Of a stretch of DNA of 64,000 nt, positions 1,199-16,850 are shown in pieces; positions within the stretch are counted from its first letter, which is position 1, and each line of letters begins with the position of its first letter. The position numbers and the translations under genes are program-made. The notes under the pieces were generated by a model, which made no database searches, was not told the DNA's origin, and was given only the letters and a program-made list of their open reading frames with translations. This stretch comes from Adineta vaga (Eukaryota; Animalia; Rotifera), in the NCBI GenBank assembly GCA_021613535.1, contig CP075493.1:17732001-17796000 (forward strand). The letters run 5' to 3'.

Positions 1199-3062
1199 AA
1201 ATAGTGCATTAAATAAACTTTTACAACATATTAAAACTGTCGGTGGTCGAGTTATGGGATCAGCATATTCTAGAACGGCCTTACGTACTCGTATACATGC
1301 ACTTATTTTTAATCAAGGTTTACCGAGTATATTTCTTACCATAAATCCAGCCGACATTCATAGTCCTGTAGCATTATATTTTGCTGGTGTTCAACTCAAT
1401 CTTGATCAAATTAAAGATGAACAACTTATGGATACTTATCGAAGAGCCGAAATTATAGCATCTCATCCTGTTGCTACTGCCAAATTTTTCCATGTATTGA
1501 TCAGCAATATCTTGGAAACTATGATAATGGATGGAGTTCTTGGGCCAATAAAGGCTTACTTTGGTACAGTCGAAAGTCAAGGCCGAGGTTCACTTCACTT
1601 GCATCTTCTTATTTGGCTTGATCATGATATGAAACCAACTGATATGAAAGAAAAAATTCAAGATGCTACTTTTCGTAACAAGCTAATAGCATATTTAGAA
1701 GATATCATCAAAGAAGATTTAGATGATTTCAAAGAAAAACAAATCACCGAATCTTCTAACGGTATGAAATATATTTATGCTATTGAATTGTTCATCTTTC
1801 TTTATTTATAGTAGAACCACAACCATCGCAAAATAATATTTATAATGCTTTACGTACTATTGATTTGACAGGTGCTGCAGAAAATACACTTCGGTCGCCT
1901 CTTTTTTCAACACCAACTAAGCAGCATTTACCTTCTCCATCGATTCCATTTCGTTCACCATCAATTCCATATGGATCTCCAGTAGCAAGTCCATTGGCAC
2001 GAACACCAACACATGATCGATCTGCAGTTGGTACGTTACAATAAAATTTTATAAAAATAAAATATTTATAAGTATTTTCAGATATGAATGTGTCATCTAA
2101 TCAATCAAAATTACCACCAGCTTGCTTACCCACTCCAAATCCATCGTCGCCTAATTTTCGATCAAAATTTCGTGCACATGTAGCACAAGTTGCTGAATCT
2201 AGCAATACTCATAGGCACTGTGATACATGTTTTAAATACTGCAAGGATGGTAAGAGGATTTGTCGATCGATTATGCCACGAAAAAGGTGCCAGTATCAAC
2301 AATCGATTCAGAAACTGGTGGTATTTCGATGAAACGATCAGATCCATGGATGAATAATTTCAATGAATATATTATCTCAGCTTGTCGATCCAATATGGAT
2401 ATTAAATTTAATTGGACTGGAAATGATACCAAAGCTTTAGTCTATTATATTACCGATTATGTCACAAAAATGAGTCTCTCATTTCATGATACATTTTCTC
2501 TTGTTCAAAAAAGTATTACATCATTACAAAATCCAAACAACCAAGTAGACACGGAAAATGTAATTGAAAAATCACGTAAACTCGTTTTACGTTGTTATAA
2601 TGCACTTGCTTCACAACAAGAATTATCTGGTGTGCAAGTTGCTTCTTATCTCATGAATTGGGACGACCATTATACAACACATAAGTTTCAAGGTCTTTAT
2701 TTGATTCAAACCGAACGATTTTTACAAAGTGAATTAAATGAAATGCGTGCTAAACAAAATCTTCAATCAACATCTCAGGGTAAGTCTAATTAATTCCTTT
2801 TATATGTTTATTATTTCATTCTCTCATACGGTGACAATCTTTTTTTTTTATATGTTAGGCGTGAGAGACGCATAGAGAGAGAGGAGAGGAAGAGAGAAGA
2901 GAGAAGGAGAAAAAGAAAGAAGGAAGCGAAAAAGAAAAAGAGATAGCGATAGGCTCAAATTGAACATAAGGAAAGTTGACCTATAACAATTGATTAGCCG
3001 CACACGTATATGTTAAGACAGAAAGGAAAGAGGAATGATAGGAAGAAGGATAACGTTCAATA

Positions 3063-3723
3063 GAGTAGATAGGGGCTATTATGAATGCGTTTTTAAAAAA
3101 TCGTATTAAATCTGTTATAACTCTTCCATTTTTCGTTCATTTTTTTTGCCGAAAACACCAATGTGTAGCCCGAACATTTTTCTTCAAGTCTGTCTAAAAA
3201 TTATTCGCAGATCTTGTCTAGACCATGTTCAGCACCTATTCTACTGAGAGCCCTGCATTTTGTTCATACTAGCCTCGTTTCTGACAATTATGAACATACA
3301 GTGAAAGATGCGGGGCAATTATGAACACTAATGTAAATTAGCTGAAAAAGCTAAGCCTCATTGTAATTCGCTTTACTCGTGATAGAAACAAGATTTACTA
3401 TTGATTTTTTCATCAATCGATAGAGTATCTCTTTCTCTACAATTGGTGATGTTCATCCAGTTATATCGCACAATTTGAAGTAACGCCAACTAAAATGATG
3501 AGAAGTAATCAACGGAAAAAAAATTTTTTTTTGTTCATAATTGCCCCATTGAGGCAATTATGAACGCTAATTAATATAGTGGGACTATTGTGAACAATAC
3601 ATTAAAACACCAGCTAAACTTAGCTCCTAATTTCTGATCAGTTTCTAAATGAACTAAGCATCAGATTGAGAAATTTTTGCTACAAAAAAGATGCACCATT
3701 TCATTCTCTATAATCCTATACTA
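3063..3723 (+). repeat. pogo left TIR (661 bp)
   Basis: Inverted match to 6745-7362 and 19956-19998; internal GGGGCAATTATGAAC-like repeats. Confidence 0.92.
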
Positions 3724-6744: not shown

Positions 6745-7362
6745 TAGTATAGGATTATAGAGAATGAAATGGTGCATCTTTTTTGTAGCAAAAATTTCTC
6801 AATCTGATGCTTAGTTCATTTAGAAACTGATCAGAAATTAGGAGCTAAGTTTAGCTGGTGTTTTAATGTATTGTTCACAATAGTCCCACTATATTAATTA
6901 GCGTTCATAATTGCCTCAATGGGGCAATTATGAACAAAAAAAAATTTTTTTTCCGTTGATTACTTCTCATCATTTTAGTTGGCGTTACTTCAAATTGTGC
7001 GATATAACTGGATGAACATCACCAATTGTAGAGAAAGAGATACTCTATCGATTGATGAAAAAATCAATAGTAAATCTTGTTTCTATCACGAGTAAAGCGA
7101 ATTACAATGAGGCTTAGCTTTTTCAGCTAATTTACATTAGTGTTCATAATTGCCCCGCATCTTTCACTGTATGTTCATAATTGTCAGAAACGAGGCTAGT
7201 ATGAACAAAATGCAGGGCTCTCAGTAGAATAGGTGCTGAACATGGTCTAGACAAGATCTGCGAATAATTTTTAGACAGACTTGAAGAAAAATGTTCGGGC
7301 TACACATTGGTGTTTTCGGCAAAAAAAATGAACGAAAAATGGAAGAGTTATAACAGATTTAA
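6745..7362 (-). repeat. pogo right TIR, inner 618 bp (outer 43 bp displaced to 19956-19998)
   Basis: Reverse complement of 3106-3723. Confidence 0.92.
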
Positions 7363-7685
7363 GGGGACCCCCCCCCCCTTTCCGGCGTTTCTCAAGAACG
7401 GTCAAGCCAAAAGTTCTGAAATTTTCAGGGTAGATAGCTCTCGAAGAGTAGAACAAAAGTTCTCACAGGCCAAAAGTTGCCAGACCTCGTCGTCACATGG
7501 AGTGGCAAATATCAAATTGGAACAAATTTTAAAGGTTGCGTGTCAAAATTATTAAAAATTTTAACTTTTAAAAACTTGAAAATTTTAAAAATTCTTATAA
7601 TTTTTGCAAATTGAGTAAGTATAAAAATAAAAGTGCGTTATCACATGAATTATTAGTGTAAAACAAAAATCAATCTCTACTACAG

Positions 7686-7872
7686 TTAAAATTCAATCAG
7701 AAACCAGAAATCTACCTTCGATGAAATTAAAATTCAATCAGAAATCAGAAATCTACGTTTGATACAACTAAAATTCAATCAGAAATCAGAAATCTACCTT
7801 CGATGAAATTAAAATTCAATCAGAAATCAGAAATCTACGCTTGATACAATTAAAATTCAATCAGAAATCAGC
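7686..7872. repeat. 41-bp tandem repeat, ~4.5 copies (KDZ left subterminal)
   Basis: Unit TTAAAATTCAATCAGAAATCAGAAATCTACCTTCGATGAAA at 7686, 7727 and onward. Confidence 0.9.
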
Positions 7873-7978
7873 AATTAGAACAATTATAATACTTTTTGTC
7901 AATCAAGAATCAACCAAAGAAGTGAATTTGCGAGATATATTTGTAAAGAAAAGTGGTAAGGATTAATAAAAAAAGTAT

Positions 7979-10064
7979 TCAAAGTGCTTGATCATATGAA
8001 TCGATACCTGTAGTTTTACAGTTTTTTAAATGAAACAGAACTGTGAAGAATATGGTCGATTTTGGATAATTATATCCTCGAAAAGAATTTTTGAATTGCG
8101 ACAGGTACGAAAACATTTGTTCAGCAACTTGTGTATTGATGGATTTAAAAACATCATGGTGAGATGAGTGATCAGGTCTCATTACTGTTTTACACATTTG
8201 TCTTGTATGGTTCTTAACATGAAAGCGGTCAATTGCCATGGTTAGATCTGTTAGAAATTGGGTGAAATTTGTTGATTTCAAATCTTCCGTACCAAAATGT
8301 TTTTTTATAAACAATTTTAATGTGCACGCACAATCGTAACACATGGCGATGGGTAATTGACCAAACCGCTTTATTGTTAGAATATGATGAAGAACTCGTC
8401 GCACTATTATTTTATTATAGAGATGAAGAAATATGTTAATTATTAGCAAAATAAAACAAATCTTTACACCAACTTCCTTCAGAACATGGTAACTCTGTAA
8501 ATCAACTATGACAGCACAACTTAAGAATGTGGCTAAAAATCCGTAAGTACTGATTTTGCATTTAACATTTACTCCAGAGCGGAATACATTGCAAATTTTG
8601 TTATCATATTGGCCATCATCATTTATATAATCACTTAGCGCTAATTTGTCTAATACTTGTTCTTTATCTTCGTTAATGATCTCTGGTGTCATATGAGTCA
8701 TTCGATCATTTTCCTCTAATGTTGCTGGTTGATGATGCTGGCAGTATCTGTGGTCGATACCAGGTGCTATGATAAAAGCATTAATGAATACAATGATGTA
8801 CAAATCCTTATGAAATATACCTCTCCTTAACGGTGAATACAAACAACCCATCTGAATTGGACCTAACTCTGGGATGGTGCAATCAAACACATTCTTATAC
8901 TGGCAAACCAATCTATTGGCTTTTTGATGACCATCAACAACAAAAATTTTTGAGCACGTTTCAGGATTGCATTTTTTCGTAAACCGTTGATGATTTGTCC
9001 AAAAAACAACAAAATTTTTATATAGATCATTTTTAATCAACAAAAAATATGGATTACATTCATCAATATCACGTACAGACATTGGTATTTGAACAATTTT
9101 GTCGTTTGTTGTCATGAATTTAAATTTTGCAATATTGATGAAAAGCCACACCATTTGGAAATTTTTTTCATTCAAAAGACTTCAAAAGAAAACAATCACA
9201 ATGTACATATATGCAAAACAAAGTGATTATCATCTTACGAAATACAACCACCATTTACAGTAGCAGCATTGTGACCTAGTCTCCTATTGATCAATTCAAT
9301 TTTTGAGTTATAAGCGTTGGTATATCCTTCAAAAGATACTGTATTTTGGATTAAGTTTTGATCAAAATCAATCAGCAAGTTTTGATCAAATATTTGGTTA
9401 CCGTTTAAGTAAATAAACTTATCATTCTTAATTGATTCTAATGTAACAAACTTATTATTCTTTTGGATATAAAAATTTGGAAATATTTCAATATCACATG
9501 TTGCACAATAACAAGTGGCAATAACTGTCAATGAAAATTCTGGTTATTTATGCGTTATCAACAAACATTATGTGTTCACTTACGAGCTCTATATGTTCGT
9601 GTCAATGACATCACTGTCTTTGAACGATGAGCATATACAGGTTTCAATGATGTCTGGCATTCAATACATGTAGTAGTATATGGTTGTAAATATAATTCAT
9701 GTGCATTTGCAGATTCGGCAATATTGTTGGCACTATATTTATCAATCATTTCACGTATAGAATATTGCTGGAACATTGCATCAAATAATGGTTGTGTTGA
9801 CATAAATTCAATTATTGTTCGTACAGTATGAACTTCATACGATTTACCGAAATGTAAACTAATAATATTCCGTATGTGCTGATACTTATGCGGCAATTCT
9901 TGTGGAAAAAATTTGTTCAAATTCATTACACACATAATCTCATTCAAACGCATTGTTCTCATCATCAATATTAAAGTATGTTCTTCATCGGTAATTTCAA
10001 CAGGTGTACATGTTGGTATATCAGCAGAAGCTGTATTCATATTGTTATATTTATCTGAAAACAT
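7979..10064 (-). CDS. KDZ transposase with CxC5/CxC6-like cysteine clusters, multi-exon, one probable frameshift near 8503
   Basis: CIEC and CATC..PNFY clusters, VVDGHQK..R..C, YDCACTL, IDRFHVKNH...C, INTQVAEQMFSYL; short GT-AG introns between ORF segments. Confidence 0.85.
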
Positions 10065-10415
10065 ATGTAAAAATGTATTTTCTAGATAATATTTACGTCA
10101 CATTTTCATGTAGTCGAATATCACACTCTCAAGGAATTGTTTACATCATCATGCATTTTAATGTATTATAATCCATCAAGATAAACTAATAATATTCATA
10201 AATACATGATAATTTAATAATTGGAGATATGAATATCGCTTCGAGTAAGACTTAATTCTTTTTATTTTTATTTTCCATATTAACGTAAGAAGTATATGCG
10301 GAAGTAAAAAAGAACTAAAAATATAAAATTTGACATGCATCAGGCATATTCGAATAAAAAAGTCAATAAAAAATGTCATTATTTAAAAGTTAATACTATT
10401 GTTGAATGAAGTTAA

Positions 10416-13400
10416 TTAATATTTTTTCTTCATTCTTCTTGGTTGTGTTCGTACTTCGTTTTCTTGATCATCAACTGCCCGTAGTTTTCGTTTTGGTCGT
10501 ACAGTTAATGCCAATGTACTTGTAGTTTCAGCTTCTGTAGTTGCATCGATTTGCAGCTGTTGTGTTAATTGGTGAGGTATGTCATCTGTTACACTCTTCT
10601 CACAAGGTAATGAATGTGATATTTGTGTCAACGGTAATTCATTTTCATTATTACTATCGATTTCTTTTAATACATCTGTTGGTCTGAAACGTTGGATGTC
10701 CCATCGAACATGTTCCACGTAGAAAGTATCTGATTGAAAAACCTTGATACATTCATCTGATAGAGTCCAATTATTATTGGTAAACACATTTTCTTTTTGA
10801 TGTGGATAAAAACTCTTCATATACTCTTCAAGTGACATGTTTGCCTACAATAGAATCAAAACGAGATACATATTATCAATTAGAAATCGTGCAAAATGAA
10901 AGAAAGAGATGTGTTACATTTTTCTGCAATGATGCAATGAATTTGAATTTCGATGTGTTGGATTGTAATTGAGGAGCTTTTCTTTGAAAAAAGAATAAAA
11001 ATAATTCGTGTTAGGAAGAAATATAGTTTCAGTTATTACTTGATCCATCCCTCTCTTAAGGAACGCTTCGTATCTTTTTTGATACTTTTTTTTGATCGAC
11101 TTGGTTCTATCCATAAGTCATCCTTCTGCTCGAGTAGCTCAGCTTCAATCAATCGTGTAATCGCTTCCAAACGTATTGATGGTCTATTACATATCTGGGT
11201 AAGATCTGTTTTTGTATAAATAACAGATTTGCTACGTAATATATTATTCATTACTCTTTTCACCGTTTGTTCAGAATGTTTATCATCTGTTTTTTTCACT
11301 ATAGAGAATAATTTAACAAAAGTTCGAAAAAAAAGAAACAATCTATGCGAACCTTCTTTGATGTTATATGATACTAATGTAGAAGAATGTGCATCATCAG
11401 TACTGCCGTTCAGTATTTCAGTTTCAATCTGATTACTACATATAGATATAGAAGAATTATCAAGATCTTTCAATATTTGTGAACTATCAAGCTCAGGTGT
11501 TTCTAAATGCATAGGTGTAGATTATTGAAATTAAAAAATAGAAGAACAAATACTATTATTGACGTCAACATGTTGCTCATATATCAGTTGCACATCTAAA
11601 TCTTGATGTTGTTCTTCACAATCTTTTTCATGTGTATTACATGGAACATTGACTACTGATTCTGTAGTTTTTTCCAATTGAATTGGAGAACTAGTTGTTG
11701 GTTTTGGCGGATTTGCTGCTTTACAATTATTATCTGATTGCTTTCGTCGATTGCACAATAGTAAATTTTCAATATCATTATAATCACAAGAGAATACATC
11801 TTCATTCGTAGTAACAAAGCATCCATCTTCGACTTCTTGTACACTACCATTCTGAATATGATGTTGAATTACTGTTTCTAAATGATTTTTATAACATTTG
11901 TAATATGGCACAAGACAAGAACTGTATTTGAAAATTTCCAAAGATAATGGTGACAATTTGTTATTTGGTGGAATGGAAGATATACGATAGACCGAATAAT
12001 ATTCATCAACATTTATGCCATGTTTGATCAATTTGTTTTTTACACATTCTTGAAGTTCATCGTTAGCTTTGGTTATTGGAATTTTCATATACGATTTTAT
12101 TTTTCTATTTCGAGCATCCAGTAAAAAATAATTGAATTTCAACAAACCATCATTGATCAATTCTTTTAATGCTTGTTCACCTAATGCAGGACGATTTTTA
12201 AGAATTCCGCTTAAAATAATAAATATGAGATGAATATCCGGTTAAACAATTAGAGAGATGGCTACACTTACGTCTGTCCTGTTATAGGATGTTTGTCTGT
12301 CAACGTTGATAATGGAAAAATATTGAATTCACAGAGCATAATTAATTCTTTTAGTCGTGTTTGTTCAGATACAGTTGATGAATGTTTAGTTACAGGTTTA
12401 GTAGAAAAATTGTAATCAATAGTAAACAAAGTTGTCACAACATCGAGTTGATGCTCGTACCATTTCCAAGCAGCCAACACCGCATCCTTGTGAACAATTA
12501 TCATCGGATCCATTGTTGTTTGATCAACGTTCTTTTTTCGTGGTAAATATGTCACATCATAAACATAAAATTTACTTCTAATTATATTTTGTACATTTAC
12601 GATGAACTTCTCATTTATGACAGAATCTTCATCATCTCCTTCTGAATACACTACCGTTTCGTATACTTCACTCAATATACTCATTGCATTGTAATAGAGC
12701 TGAATCAAACAAGCAATACGTGGAATTGTATCTGCAGCTTTCCCATAAAAATCCTTGATTTGTTGTTGTTGATCGAGTTTTTGATCATTTGACTCTTTTA
12801 AATCAATTATTAAATTCCATAACGTATACATAGAGGAATGGTCATTTTGAGATTGAGATTGTTCATCTGGTACACTCAACGATTGATCAAATGTAGCTAC
12901 AATGACATGATAATGAGAAAGATACCAACATATACTCGATGCTTCAGTCATACATACCACCATAGATATTTTCTCGTTCAGATTCACTCATTTCGAACAC
13001 ATAACGGACTTTTTCAAATAAATGTGCAATAACACATAAATGATTAAATGATGGATTATTTTCAGAATATCTATTTCGACGAAAACTGAAAATGAATAAT
13101 TTCAAGTTATTATATGTCTATTTATACTATGAATTCATTACTTTTGCGGTCTTGAATAAATCATCTTTGGCATAACCATATAAATAAACCTGTTATGGGA
13201 GCCATCGAATCCCGCACAATTGCTCCAGTTTTTCATATTTTTCATTAATTTACCACCAGTAGTTGCAATGAAGATAGTCAAACGTTTATCATCGATCTTA
13301 ATAATGGTTGTTCCGGTAGTTCGAAATGACTTTTTGAATCTTATGAAAAAAAAATCTGCTTTTATGATTTAGTTATTTTCTGTACTCTTTACCCATCATA

Positions 13401-14106
13401 ACCACACAGAATTAAATTTCGTTCATGTTCTTTACCACCATCTGTGGCGTTATATAAACCATAGTTTTCAGCAATAATATCAGCATCATCGTTCAACAAG
13501 ATTTTACAATTCGATGAGAGATGTTGTCTTAAGCCGATATGATTTGTATGACTAACGACAGACGATACATCTTCCTCTGTTAACGCTCCGCTGACCATTA
13601 CCGGTTTCAGGTATGTAGATGGAAACATTTTTTCAGTTTTTGTGATAGCTTTTTCCATTTGACGAAAAGCATGCGATTTACCACTTCCTTTAAGACATCA
13701 AAAAATAGTATATTAAAAAATCAACTTAAATGAAAGTTAGATAGAATCTTAAGTTCTCTTTTTAGAGATGTATTTTGACTTAAATAAAAAAATCTTTTGT
13801 GCAACATCAATGATACTGACCGCTTGCACCCAAAACCCACATGTACAACTGAACGGGTCGATGATCAGTGCCGACAAAATGAGTATAATATGATCCTCGA
13901 GCGAAGTGTGACATCATTCCCAATGACATAAAAAATGACAGGGATGGATCATAGTTATACATTTGTTTGTAGCTATTAATCATTCCCATTTGTCGCTCAC
14001 TCAAAATTTCATTGATATTGAACTTCATTTTTGAAACCACCGAAATATTATGCAATATCATTTCAGATAACAGCTTCTCGTCAAGCATTGATCCTCGCTT
14101 AGCCAT
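10416..14106 (-). CDS. DUF3987/YfjI-like P-loop ATPase (putative helicase) with C-terminal winged-helix-like repeats, multi-exon
   Basis: Walker A GASG|SGKS split by an intron (~13821-13688), Walker B-like LLNDD, ILCGYDG, LTIFIATTG, DGSHNRF (Arg finger-like), YGKAADTIPRIA and DAVLAA..WY. Repeats NRPALGEQALKELINDGLL and NRPSIRLEAITRLIEAELL. Confidence 0.72.
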
Positions 14107-14961
14107 GTTACTATTAAAACAACATAATTAATCATGTATTTCATTCGTAAAAAAATAACTTTACCGAAAAAATTGAACTTTATTTCTATAAATTAGCAGA
14201 CAATTTAACCAACAGTAACTTGAATTTTCGTTATATAAAATTAGCTGTGTACAGATGATATTTCTCCTTATTCGAAAAATCCTTTAAATAGGCCTCGCTC
14301 ACAAAGAAATCCTATCAGTTTATTGCCTTGTTATAAAAAAAAAAGATAAATAGTACTGATATCAACCAAATACAAAGAAAACATGATGACGTCTAGCGAA
14401 ATCTTAACCAAAACCAGTCTTCTTTGATCGAAAATATATCATATCATCTTGTGATATATCGTATACGACATACCCTTGGTACATCAGTAAGAATCGAAAA
14501 CATTCTTCTTCAGCTGTGAACATATGATTACATCTGATATATCATATGACAAACCCTAGACAGAAAGGAAAGCAAAAAAATACAGCTGATGTCTGTCAGC
14601 TGTTCACAGAACGCAAAACCATATATACATCCATATATTTATCACGTATATCATCCAGTTAAATAACAGAAAAGAAAAAAAACATCGTGACATAAAAATC
14701 ACATATACAACCTATACCAAAACAAGGCTATTTCTTTTATTCGAGAAACTTTATCGAACATAGAAGCTTTCATACTAATCGCTTAAATATCAATACTAAA
14801 GCTTTCAATGCACTTTCTATAAAAATTAAACCAATTTAATCATCTACTTACACCGCCGGATTCCAAAAAAACTCACAGCAACAAACCTAATCAACAACTA
14901 ACATTTTCCTTCACCTTCCATTTCGTTTTTCCGTCTTAAAGCTTCATACTCCTATATGATC

Positions 14962-15550
14962 ATAATGAATTATCTCTGTTATATATAGAAGAATTTTAAA
15001 ATTTTATATTCGAAGTAAACTTCTGATTTCTTCTTTCCTATTTACTGTAGGTGTTCATATACACATATGATGAATTATCTTTGTTATATATAGAAGAATT
15101 TTAAAATTTTATATTCGAAGTAAACTTCTGATTTCTTCTTTCCTATTAACTGTAGGTGTTCATATACACATATAATGAATTATCTTTGTTATATATAGAA
15201 GAATTTTAAAATTTTATATTCGAAGTAAACTTCTGATTTCTTCTTTCCTATTAACTGTAGGTGTTCATATACACATATGATGAATTATCTTTGTTATATA
15301 TGGAAAAATTTTGAAATTTTATATTCGAAGTAAACTTCTGATTTCTTCTTTCCTATTTACTGTAGGTGTTCATATACACATATGATGAATTATCTTTGTT
15401 ATATATAGAAGAATTTTAAAATTTTATATTCGAAGTAAACTTCTGATTTCTTCTTTCCTATTAACTGTAGGTGTTCATATACACATATGATGAATTATCT
15501 TTGTTATATATGGAAAAATTTTGAAACTTAATAGTCGAAGCAAATTTCTG
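14962..15550. repeat. 105-bp tandem repeat, ~5.5 near-identical copies (KDZ right subterminal)
   Basis: ACACATAT recurs at 15061, 15166, 15271, 15376 and 15481. Confidence 0.95.
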
Positions 15551-16850
15551 TTTTCTGTTGTCTACGGAGACGAGTGCGAGAGTAAATTTCTGCTGAAAAT
15601 GCAGAAATCAGAGGTAGAACTTTGTTCAAAACTGGTTACAATTTGAGATTTGCCACGTCCTCCGTCGTCATGGACTTCTGGAGACCCAAAGGTCCAAAAA
15701 TGGCCTAAAGTTTTCCCCCCCGCAAATCCACAGATTTCAATATTTTGGGCTGAAATTTATACTGTAGATAGTAGACCCCAATCCTGGGGTATATATTTTT
15801 TTTTTTTGAAAAATTCCTAAAACTCACTTCAGGAGATCCAAAATACTGAGGACATCCTCCAAAACCTCGCTTTTCAGGGTGCTAAAAATTTTGCAAATGC
15901 TGCCAAATTTTTTTGGTGAGACATATCAACAAAAAAAAAAAAACATACCCCCCAAATCAGTTGAAGCCTTACCAAAAAAATTTTCAGCCCGATCGGACTT
16001 ACAATGGTGGAGAAAAAGGGGGAAAACTGGTTTTTGTTACCCAAAAAACTAGTTTCGAGAAAAATGCAAAATAAGAAAAAGTTGTGGAAAATTTTTCTTT
16101 TTCCGTTTGTATGCTAGTATTTTTGCTACTTTTGTGGTACTGAAGGTAGTTTTGCATGAGGAATCCGAATCTGAGGTCGGTTTTAATTAAATAATTAGTC
16201 GAGTTATTAATTAAATATTAATTAGTCCTTAATTAGTTGATCAATTTTTTATAATAGAGCAAAAGGAGTATTCGATGATGTAGAATCCGAATCTGATGTC
16301 AGATTTATTTATTTAATTAATTAGTTAACTGATTTTGGTTAAACAACGATTTTTCTGGAAAAATCCAACTTACTCAAATATGAATGGTGAATATGAATCG
16401 AACATCAATTCTGATTTATTAATTATTATTAACTGATTAATTGATGAGAGACATGAAAAATTCGAATAAAACGTGTCAATAATTAGCCATTGATGAAACA
16501 TCTATATCTACAATCCATTCTAATTAGCTAATTAATCATTTATTAATTATTAAAAATCTTTTTTCTTTTTATCTAAAAGTAAACAAGCATGAAAAATCCG
16601 AATGTGTAGAGACAATGAAAGTGTTCTCCCCTCTAATACTACTATTTCTCACTTTCAAATCTTTAATCGTATTATTCTCCACTCACAAGTCTTTCTTTAG
16701 TAAGTTTTATTAGATATCTTATAGTTTTATATAAACTTCCTTTTCCCATAAGAAACAAGAAAAACAACAAGCATTTATGTATGGCAAGCAACATCAAAAT
16801 TGAGAAAAATATTCGTTCAAGGTATGTTTATTTCTTTTTTAAAAATACAA

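Follow-up and report, generated by a model that had tools for sequence, protein, structure and literature searches.

A KDZ-superfamily transposon of the rotifer Adineta vaga with an MCM-like DUF3987 ATPase gene beside its transposase gene

Why should a DNA transposon of an animal code for a helicase-type ATPase in addition to its transposase? The question is raised by a 64,000-nucleotide (nt) stretch of the genome of the bdelloid rotifer Adineta vaga (GenBank assembly GCA_021613535.1, contig CP075493.1, positions 17,732,001 to 17,796,000; referred to here as the window), which contains an 8167-bp element of the Kyakuja-Dileera-Zisupton (KDZ) superfamily with two genes, one for a CxC5+KDZ transposase and one for a DUF3987/MCM-like AAA+ ATPase. 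A transposase, in some cases with a DNA-binding helper, is commonly taken to be all that a eukaryotic cut-and-paste transposon requires, and ATP-driven partners (MuB, TnsC, IstB) and element-encoded replicative helicases (Cch, SaPI Rep, DUF3987 proteins) are typical of mobile elements in bacteria. KDZ elements are mobile, generate 8-bp target-site duplications (TSDs), and carry additional open reading frames (ORFs) of unknown function; the extra genes known in them are TET/JBP or unannotated ORFs (PMC11343200, PMC12730594). The explanation that best accounts for the locus as a whole, and that we regard as probable, is a KDZ transposon with an integral MCM-like ATPase that aids its transposition. 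The assembly scanned comprises six contigs (C1 to C6, 100.8 Mb), the window being C1:17732001-17796000.

The element extends from 7496 to 15662 of the window, with left and right ends CATGGAGTGGCAAAT and ATTTGCCACGTCCTC, and is flanked by exact copies of the 8-mer CGTCGTCA at 7488-7495 and 15663-15670. The terminal inverted repeats (TIRs) lie at 7496-7535 (plus strand, starting CATGGAGTGGCAAATATCAAATTGG) and 15623-15662 (minus strand, ending CAATTTGAGATTTGCCACGTCCTC) and are imperfect, with 84% complementarity between the arms 7502-7533 and 15625-15656, the outermost 6 nt being unlike at the two ends. A twin copy, L002 (C3:1004292-1012310), shares 99.8% identity with homology limits of exactly 7496 and 15662, and because this identity begins and ends at the same bases, the boundaries do not depend on the inverted repeat alone. 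Four further insertions have the same termini and their own exact 8-bp duplications, namely L013 (1324 bp, GATTTCAA), L014 (5673 bp, TCAAAATC), L015 (1098 bp, TTGATTGG), and L017 (8450 bp, CTCTTTCA; 73% nt identity to the window element), such that distinct exact TSDs are seen at five insertions including the window copy. The terminus is kept in at least six copies, and the 100.8-Mb genome contains 21 occurrences of the terminal 18-mer and none of a reversed control. The element is therefore a real, low-copy, and recently mobile DNA transposon, and its TSD, TIR, CxC domain, and transitive homology place it by sequence in the KDZ superfamily. An initial annotation, made from the letters of the window, had described an 8.2-kb unit bounded by an exact 8-bp TSD and imperfect TIRs, which the termini, the L002 limits, and the four members with other TSDs bear out; that 8-bp TSDs typify Zisupton, as it noted, is also stated in PMC12730594.

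L002 has the same termini as the window copy, no TSD (ATAAAAAA vs TATTACTC), and one 41-bp unit and one 105-bp unit fewer in its subterminal arrays. A search with both flanks of the window copy for a paralogous empty site found none, the flanks themselves being repetitive, with repeats at C2:16.08 Mb, C2:16.10 Mb, and C1:15.27 Mb. A perfect 267-bp inverted repeat is also present in the window (3106-3372 and 7096-7362), one arm of which stops 134 bp left of the element.

The ATPase gene (10416-14106, minus strand) is predicted to have nine exons (14106-13821, 13687-13393, 13339-13142, 13085-12958, 12896-12272, 12209-11554, 11502-11040, 10981-10918, and 10844-10416) and to code for 1047 amino acids (aa). 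The DNA is AT-rich and its introns are short, with the eight in this gene being 51 to 133 nt long and of the GT-AG type, and the 3144-nt frame has no internal stops, indicating that the gene is intact in the window copy. Junctions were placed where GT-AG boundaries and an open frame coincided with a match to rotifer homologues and to the L017 and C3 lineages described below; joined protein models were checked for length and stops, and profile searches were run on single exons. A stretch reading FFKEKLLNYN, resembling FNKHLNEYG of the bdelloid Didymodactylos carnosus, was tried as an exon and dropped, as only the other frame (SNTSKFKFIASLQKN) is GT-AG flanked and conserved in three lineages.

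The predicted protein has, in order, Walker A, Walker B, RTTGTT, ATTGG, and HNRF motifs. Walker A (GASG/SGKS; 13674-13830, minus strand) is divided by intron 1 (13820-13688) and is represented as GSGK[ST] in all lineages and in D. carnosus, and Walker B (ILLNDDAD; 13479-13502, minus strand) contains DD in the three lineages of A. vaga, the D. carnosus counterpart being DE.D. The MCM Walker B is DEFD and the MCM arginine finger region is SRFD; HNRF (13186-13197, minus strand), kept as G.HNR[FM] in all rotifer copies, matches the latter in place and is a candidate arginine finger. The C terminus is basic (RPKRKLR…RRMKKKY) and has the appearance of a possible nuclear localization signal (NLS).

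Membership of the ATPase in a known family was sought with profiles and searches. Against Pfam DUF3987 (PF13148; cut-off, 27 bits), exon 3 scores 13.5 bits (profile positions 184-240) and exon 5 scores 14.6 bits (300-331), which are weak but collinear single-exon matches, and the rotifer homologues P0061 (59.6 bits), P0030 (54.9 bits), and P0058 (32.4 bits) are above the cut-off. A full HMMER scan with exon 5 over 1.84 billion representatives yielded 42 relatives, of which every named one is bdelloid (Rotaria socialis, R. magnacalcarata, R. sordida, and D. carnosus), and word-indexed protein searches with P0061, an alignment, and the ATPase ORF of a second A. vaga family reached only rotifer proteins. 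A PDB sequence search returned no meaningful match, and NCBIfam profiles had no match to the ATPase exons. By the scores of its homologues and the fold described below, the ATPase is assigned to the DUF3987/superfamily 6 (SF6, MCM-like) helicases, which are distant relatives of MCM with a winged helix-turn-helix at their C terminus (PMC4889955) and include one protein demonstrated to be a 5'-3' helicase (PMC11724360). The DUF3987 assignment of the initial annotation thus stands, as the homologues pass the Pfam cut-off, and the MCM-like alternative that it had named is the same family (PMC4889955).

The fold was predicted with AlphaFold (AF2) for a D. carnosus homologue (P0063, residues 1 to 640) from an 18-row alignment that included the window exons, giving a mean local confidence (pLDDT) of 74.7. 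Foldseek with this model gave only MCM helicases as top matches (E 3.5e-6, probability 1.0), and in an exhaustive fold alignment the best 11 are all MCM or MCM8/9 chains (MCM2-7, MCM8/9, and archaeal MCM AAA+) with Z scores of 17.0 to 14.0 over ∼270 residues and a root mean square deviation (rmsd) of ∼4, the best being 8ouw_7 (Z 17.0, rmsd 4.1 over 273 residues). This agrees with the MCM-like AAA+ fold that had been expected. Weaker matches are to ComM, RavA, BrxL, and BchI, followed by SCCmec Cch (Z 10.6) and SaPI Rep (Z 7.6). Residues 473-575 of the model form a MarR-type winged helix (Z 6.1 to 6.8, which is moderate; rmsd 1.9 to 3.3), and window exon 6, which aligns to the winged-helix region, is conserved. 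The ATPase is accordingly modeled as an N-terminal domain, an MCM-like AAA+ motor, one or more winged-helix domains, and a basic NLS-like tail.

The CxC5+KDZ transposase gene (7979-10064, minus strand) lies 351 nt downstream of the ATPase gene and is predicted to have five exons with GT-AG junctions (10064-9584, 9524 [or 9539]-9239, 9179-8821, 8766-8474, and 8403-7979), such that the earlier description of two co-oriented, intron-containing genes, an ATPase followed by a KDZ transposase, holds on the minus strand. The last exon matches Pfam KDZ (PF18758) at 20.5 bits (cut-off, 26.6; E 4e-4) and exon 2 matches Pfam CxC5 at 23.5 bits (cut-off, 26.9; E 6e-5), each a single-exon score with the KDZ domain split by introns; the N-terminal position of CxC5 and the domain order are as expected. 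Related loci in the same genome are above the cut-offs, with L028 scoring 38.7 bits for KDZ and 29 bits for CxC5 and L036 scoring 29.5 bits for KDZ, and the window KDZ piece matches these at E 3e-16 and E 2e-23, respectively. Candidate catalytic residues are D at 8935-8933, D at 8335-8333, and E at 8122-8120, which are conserved in D. carnosus, and the motifs DGHQK, YDxAC, and QVxEQ, common to the window and D. carnosus copies, have a putative catalytic role. No SWIM domain was found by a Pfam scan of the exons, the cysteine cluster being CxC5.

The transposase gene of the window copy carries a 1-base deletion (CC to C) at 8502-8503 in exon 4, where L002, another copy (L020), and all public contigs on the region keep the C. 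With the missing C restored, as in L002 and L020, the exon reads VIVGFTELPCSEG and is spliced to MRRVLHH, matching VIVGFDECPRSEGMRRV of D. carnosus. The gene model is intact in L002 (614 or 619 aa), and in the window copy the frame shifts and meets a stop near aa 482, ahead of the second Asp and the Glu, such that the transposase of the window copy is probably broken. The 398-aa ORF at 7979-9175 is in part fortuitous and misleads; it runs through two short introns, and the missing base follows 8502. Conversely, the L002 ATPase gene lacks one T at 11209 and is truncated near aa 846. Because both indels sit in short homopolymers, real decay and assembly error are indistinguishable for either, and public short-read contigs have the intact state at both sites. 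Two D. carnosus gene predictions, P0062 (1559 aa) and P0040 (874 aa), have the ATPase and KDZ transposase fused in one protein, which is probably an annotation artifact and less likely a product of read-through fusion transcripts.

These lesions bear on whether the unit is instead a pair of elements, nested or side by side, or a defunct relic whose apparent selection reflects past activity only. The frameshifted transposase of the window copy, the frameshifted ATPase of L002, the absence of a TSD at L002, and the lack of any RNA seen are all in line with such an origin. However, one pair of termini and one TSD enclose both genes with no inner TIR or TSD seen between them, only 4 sites distinguish the window copy from L002 over the 6.1 kb covering both genes, and the homopolymer indels may be assembly errors, the public short-read contigs being intact at both; we consider a nested or relic unit very unlikely.

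Does the pairing belong to the element as such, or was the ATPase gene picked up once? Both genes are present in the same order and on the same strand in three family lineages, namely, window/L002/L020, L017, and a pair of copies on C3 (at 18.51 and 18.67 Mb) with 66 to 72% nt identity to the window element. Four D. carnosus contigs have a collinear ATPase and KDZ arrangement with 25 to 45% aa identity, and in one of these (L025) 44 nt separate the matches to the first and second exons, consistent with an intron placed as window intron 1 is. A whole-genome Pfam scan of A. vaga identified four KDZ loci and five DUF3987 loci, with a KDZ gene near four of the five DUF3987 loci: the genes are collinear at C3:18.35 Mb and C3:15.25 Mb and divergently oriented at C1:17.43 Mb and C5:0.77 Mb, and the 10 kb searched at C2:16.21 Mb yielded no KDZ gene. 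Purifying selection acts on the ATPase, with pN (proportion of nonsynonymous differences) of 0.21 to 0.29, pS (its synonymous counterpart) of 0.59 to 0.65, and dN/dS of 0.21 to 0.25 among the three lineages, falling to ∼0.1 in the AAA+ core exons, and dN/dS for the KDZ transposase is 0.09 to 0.16; all of these values are approximate because codons were aligned through high-scoring segment pairs and dS is saturated. The linkage of ATPase and KDZ genes is thus recurrent and not a one-off capture. For the two-gene mobile element proposed in the initial annotation, the ATPase is found in other copies (L017 with its own TSD, the C3 pair, and the D. carnosus contigs), evolves non-neutrally (pN 0.21 against pS 0.59; dN/dS, ∼0.2), and has no syntenic host orthologue that turned up.

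A capture of another kind has also to be weighed, in which the ATPase is a passenger, a bacterial or phage gene acquired once and kept for host benefit or another selfish role such as defense or repair, and not for transposition. Bdelloids are known for their foreign genes, and the nearest nonrotifer kin of the ATPases are bacterial or phage DUF3987 clusters; fungal KDZ elements, moreover, bear cargo such as TET/JBP (PMC12730594). A passenger would not readily account for a linkage that persists across synonymous-saturated lineages, across genera, and in two gene orientations, or for selection on the AAA+ core that is about equal to that on the transposase. Genome Pfam scans turned up no stand-alone host copy, and the short derivatives of 1.1 to 1.3 kb (L013 and L015), which consist of ends and arrays and have their own TSDs, have lost both genes together; a passenger role is therefore quite unlikely.

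The divergently oriented loci belong to a second, deeply diverged KDZ family (L028/L029 at C1:17429000-17445999 and L030/L031 at C5:771000-785999), whose copies are 99% identical over more than 11 kb, one of them with an additional 2-kb insert between the genes. Its ATPase is a 408-aa intronless DUF3987 ORF (92.3 bits) that points away from the CxC5+KDZ ORF (38.7 and 29 bits for KDZ and CxC5), and it aligns with the ATPase of the window family over 294 residues with 20% identity. Relatives of the second-family ATPase are all bdelloid (Adineta ricciae, A. steineri, and Rotaria spp.), the ESM-Atlas clusters closest to it consist of DUF3987 proteins from bacteria and phages (scores of 0.96 to 0.97), and tblastn against phage genomes gave no match at E 1e-3. 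The C3 pair of the window family (C3:18505000-18516784 and C3:18661000-18673783) is in opposite orientation, ∼150 kb apart, and may be part of a larger inverted duplication; its KDZ-side terminus was found, and a search for the ATPase-side terminus of this lineage did not find one.

What the ATPase might act upon is suggested by two subterminal tandem arrays identified with Tandem Repeats Finder, a left array of 4.6 copies of a 41-bp unit (7686-7875) that carries AAATCAGAA on the plus strand and a right array of 5.6 copies of a 105-bp unit (14965-15556) that carries it on the minus strand. There are three occurrences on the plus strand in the left array and five on the minus strand in the right array, making 8 of the 11 in the 64-kb window, where ∼3 are expected, and the inverted polarity and periodic spacing are retained in L017, at 73% identity, and in the short derivatives. 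The AAATCAGAA arrays are candidate protein-binding sites. On a D. carnosus contig, L024, inverted arrays of AGGATTCT-type short repeats (∼2670-2760 and 11980-13050) flank the ATPase and KDZ genes and resemble the window arrays; a scan of the D. carnosus contigs for TIRs and TSDs found no clean ends and, in L024, only these arrays.

A mechanism may be proposed in which a DDE-type CxC5+KDZ transposase would cut and paste the element, producing the 8-bp duplications, and the ATPase would be an integral gene of the element rather than cargo. For this protein we infer an oligomeric state, a DNA target, a helicase activity, and a step of action: it would form a ring on element DNA, its winged helices would probably read the AAATCAGAA arrays facing inward from both ends, and it would then unwind or translocate DNA, helping transposition. 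In the favored version, the ATPase would open or replicate the element around excision, as proposed for Cch of SCCmec and for the DUF3987 helicases of phages and integrative elements. The replicative or target-selecting role that the initial annotation had put forward as a possibility, in the manner of TnsC/MuB, is likewise an inference. A helicase that opens or copies the element is preferred here to a switch or a passenger, if tentatively, because its close structural and family relatives are all helicases of replicons or mobile elements and because it is predicted to have DNA-reading winged helices.

The same gene pair could instead code for an ATP-dependent switch, with the AAA+ protein acting on target or end DNA to control the transposase through target choice, immunity, or synapsis in the manner of MuB, TnsC, TniB, and IstB. 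Bacterial DDE transposases with an AAA+ partner are well established, the ATPase gene is immediately upstream of the transposase gene in most lineages, conservative transposition fits the low copy number, and the DD in place of DE in Walker B of the three A. vaga lineages suggests slow hydrolysis. However, DE is retained in the D. carnosus copies, and the best folds (MCM, MCM8/9, ComM, and Cch) are all MCM-clade helicases, with no MuB, TnsC, or IstB chain among the best 50 listed for the P0063 model and no Pfam match to MuB/TnsC/IstB-type families in the window exons or rotifer homologues. Among the papers covered, the only DUF3987 protein tested is a helicase (PMC11724360), and a switch appears rather unlikely.

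Several observations nonetheless weigh against an ATPase that actively aids transposition. The window transposase and the L002 ATPase each have a 1-nt frameshift, and transcript evidence is lacking, as the sequence is all but absent from RNA-labeled runs of the species; the handful of contigs from what may be an RNA run are unspliced and contain no exon joints. The fold was modeled on a D. carnosus homologue, 25 to 43% identical to the window exons, and not on the window protein, and the Walker B DD of all A. vaga lineages of this family could mean slow hydrolysis, which would suit a switch better than a motor. For the AAA+ core, homodimer prediction scored 0.00, which counts neither way. Subterminal arrays are usual in ordinary cut-and-paste elements, where they are bound by the transposase. 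Finally, copy number is low, which does not speak for amplification, and the element codes for neither a primase nor a polymerase, leaving any replication entirely reliant on the host.

This last point concerns a more specific form of the helicase role, in which the ATPase would load onto the AAATCAGAA arrays, which are iteron-like, either at the donor site or once the element has been excised, and would recruit the host replisome, such that the element is copied before reinsertion. We view this as unlikely, but if true, the element would be a eukaryotic counterpart of the replicating SCCmec, integrative and conjugative element (ICE), and SaPI elements, with a helicase horizontally acquired from a phage or integrative element and later given introns and a nuclear localization tail.

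The element has parallels in several known systems, each with clear differences. Zisupton/KDZ elements (Zisupton of fish; Kyakuja, Dileera, and Zisupton of fungi; and KDZ1-3 and KDZx1 of Cryptococcus) likewise have a CxC-KDZ transposase, TIRs, 8-bp TSDs, lengths of 6 to 11 kb, and extra ORFs, but the partners described for them are TET/JBP, SWIM, or ORFs lacking predicted functional domains, whereas the rotifer partner is an MCM-like DUF3987 ATPase. The canonical Zisupton layout is CxC4 and SWIM with the KDZ domain (PMC11343200), and the rotifer element differs in having CxC5 without SWIM and a bdelloid host. Prokaryotic DUF3987 helicases of phages, plasmids, and integrative elements, including AgaPH, share the Pfam family, Walker A and B motifs, an MCM-like AAA+ domain, a winged helix, and residence in mobile elements; they adjoin or are fused to AEP or DnaG primases, however, whereas the rotifer element has no primase and pairs the ATPase with a DDE transposase, and the rotifer gene has eight spliceosomal introns, ∼450 more C-terminal residues, and the NLS-like tail. 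SCCmec is similarly a recombinase-moved element with its own MCM-like helicase, Cch, but it is bacterial and uses a serine recombinase, and MCM proper is closer to the rotifer ATPase in fold than Cch, at Z 10.6. MuB, TnsC, TniB, and IstB exemplify the same two-gene logic of a DDE enzyme and an adjacent AAA+ ATPase, but they are switches and target selectors rather than helicases, and no homology beyond the P-loop was seen. Helitrons are also eukaryotic transposons that encode their own helicase, but it is fused to an HUH nuclease (PMC12730594), and they have no such TSD and no DDE transposase.

Other members of the family add some detail. L014 (C5:10531764-10537436) is nonautonomous, with neither an ATPase nor a KDZ gene, and its inner part (1500-3700) contains Mutator-like transposase fragments (PF20700, up to 33.6 bits) that are probably a nested insertion. 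At C1:12807904-12808680, two family termini lie 777 bp apart and are both of the right-end sequence type, perhaps marking a short derivative whose two ends are alike. Of the family members and the other KDZ/DUF3987 loci, most are within ∼1 Mb of contig ends, for example at C1:0.41, 17.4, 17.7, and 18.07 Mb of 18.15 Mb, C2:0.16-0.43 and 16.2 Mb of 16.27 Mb, C3:0.67 and 1.0 Mb, C5:0.77 Mb, and C6:0.79-0.95 Mb, which suggests that these loci are concentrated subtelomerically.

In the literature, no paper was found that joins KDZ/Zisupton, or any eukaryotic DDE transposon, with a DUF3987 or MCM-like helicase, in keeping with the initial annotation, which knew of no description of the pairing; the search covered papers, with Repbase and Dfam outside it. 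Here, an animal has a DDE transposase in stable linkage with a helicase-type, MCM-like ATPase that is under selection across bdelloid genera and several KDZ families, and the ATPase is likely a foreign gene recruited by the transposon in a group known for horizontal transfer. As the element is small and an intact version of each gene is available among the twins and public reads, assaying transposition in the presence and absence of the ATPase is practicable. The pairing gives the unexplained second ORFs of KDZ elements a candidate function, and it is a concrete case, open to test, in which a eukaryote has a two-component transposition or replication module of the prokaryotic style.

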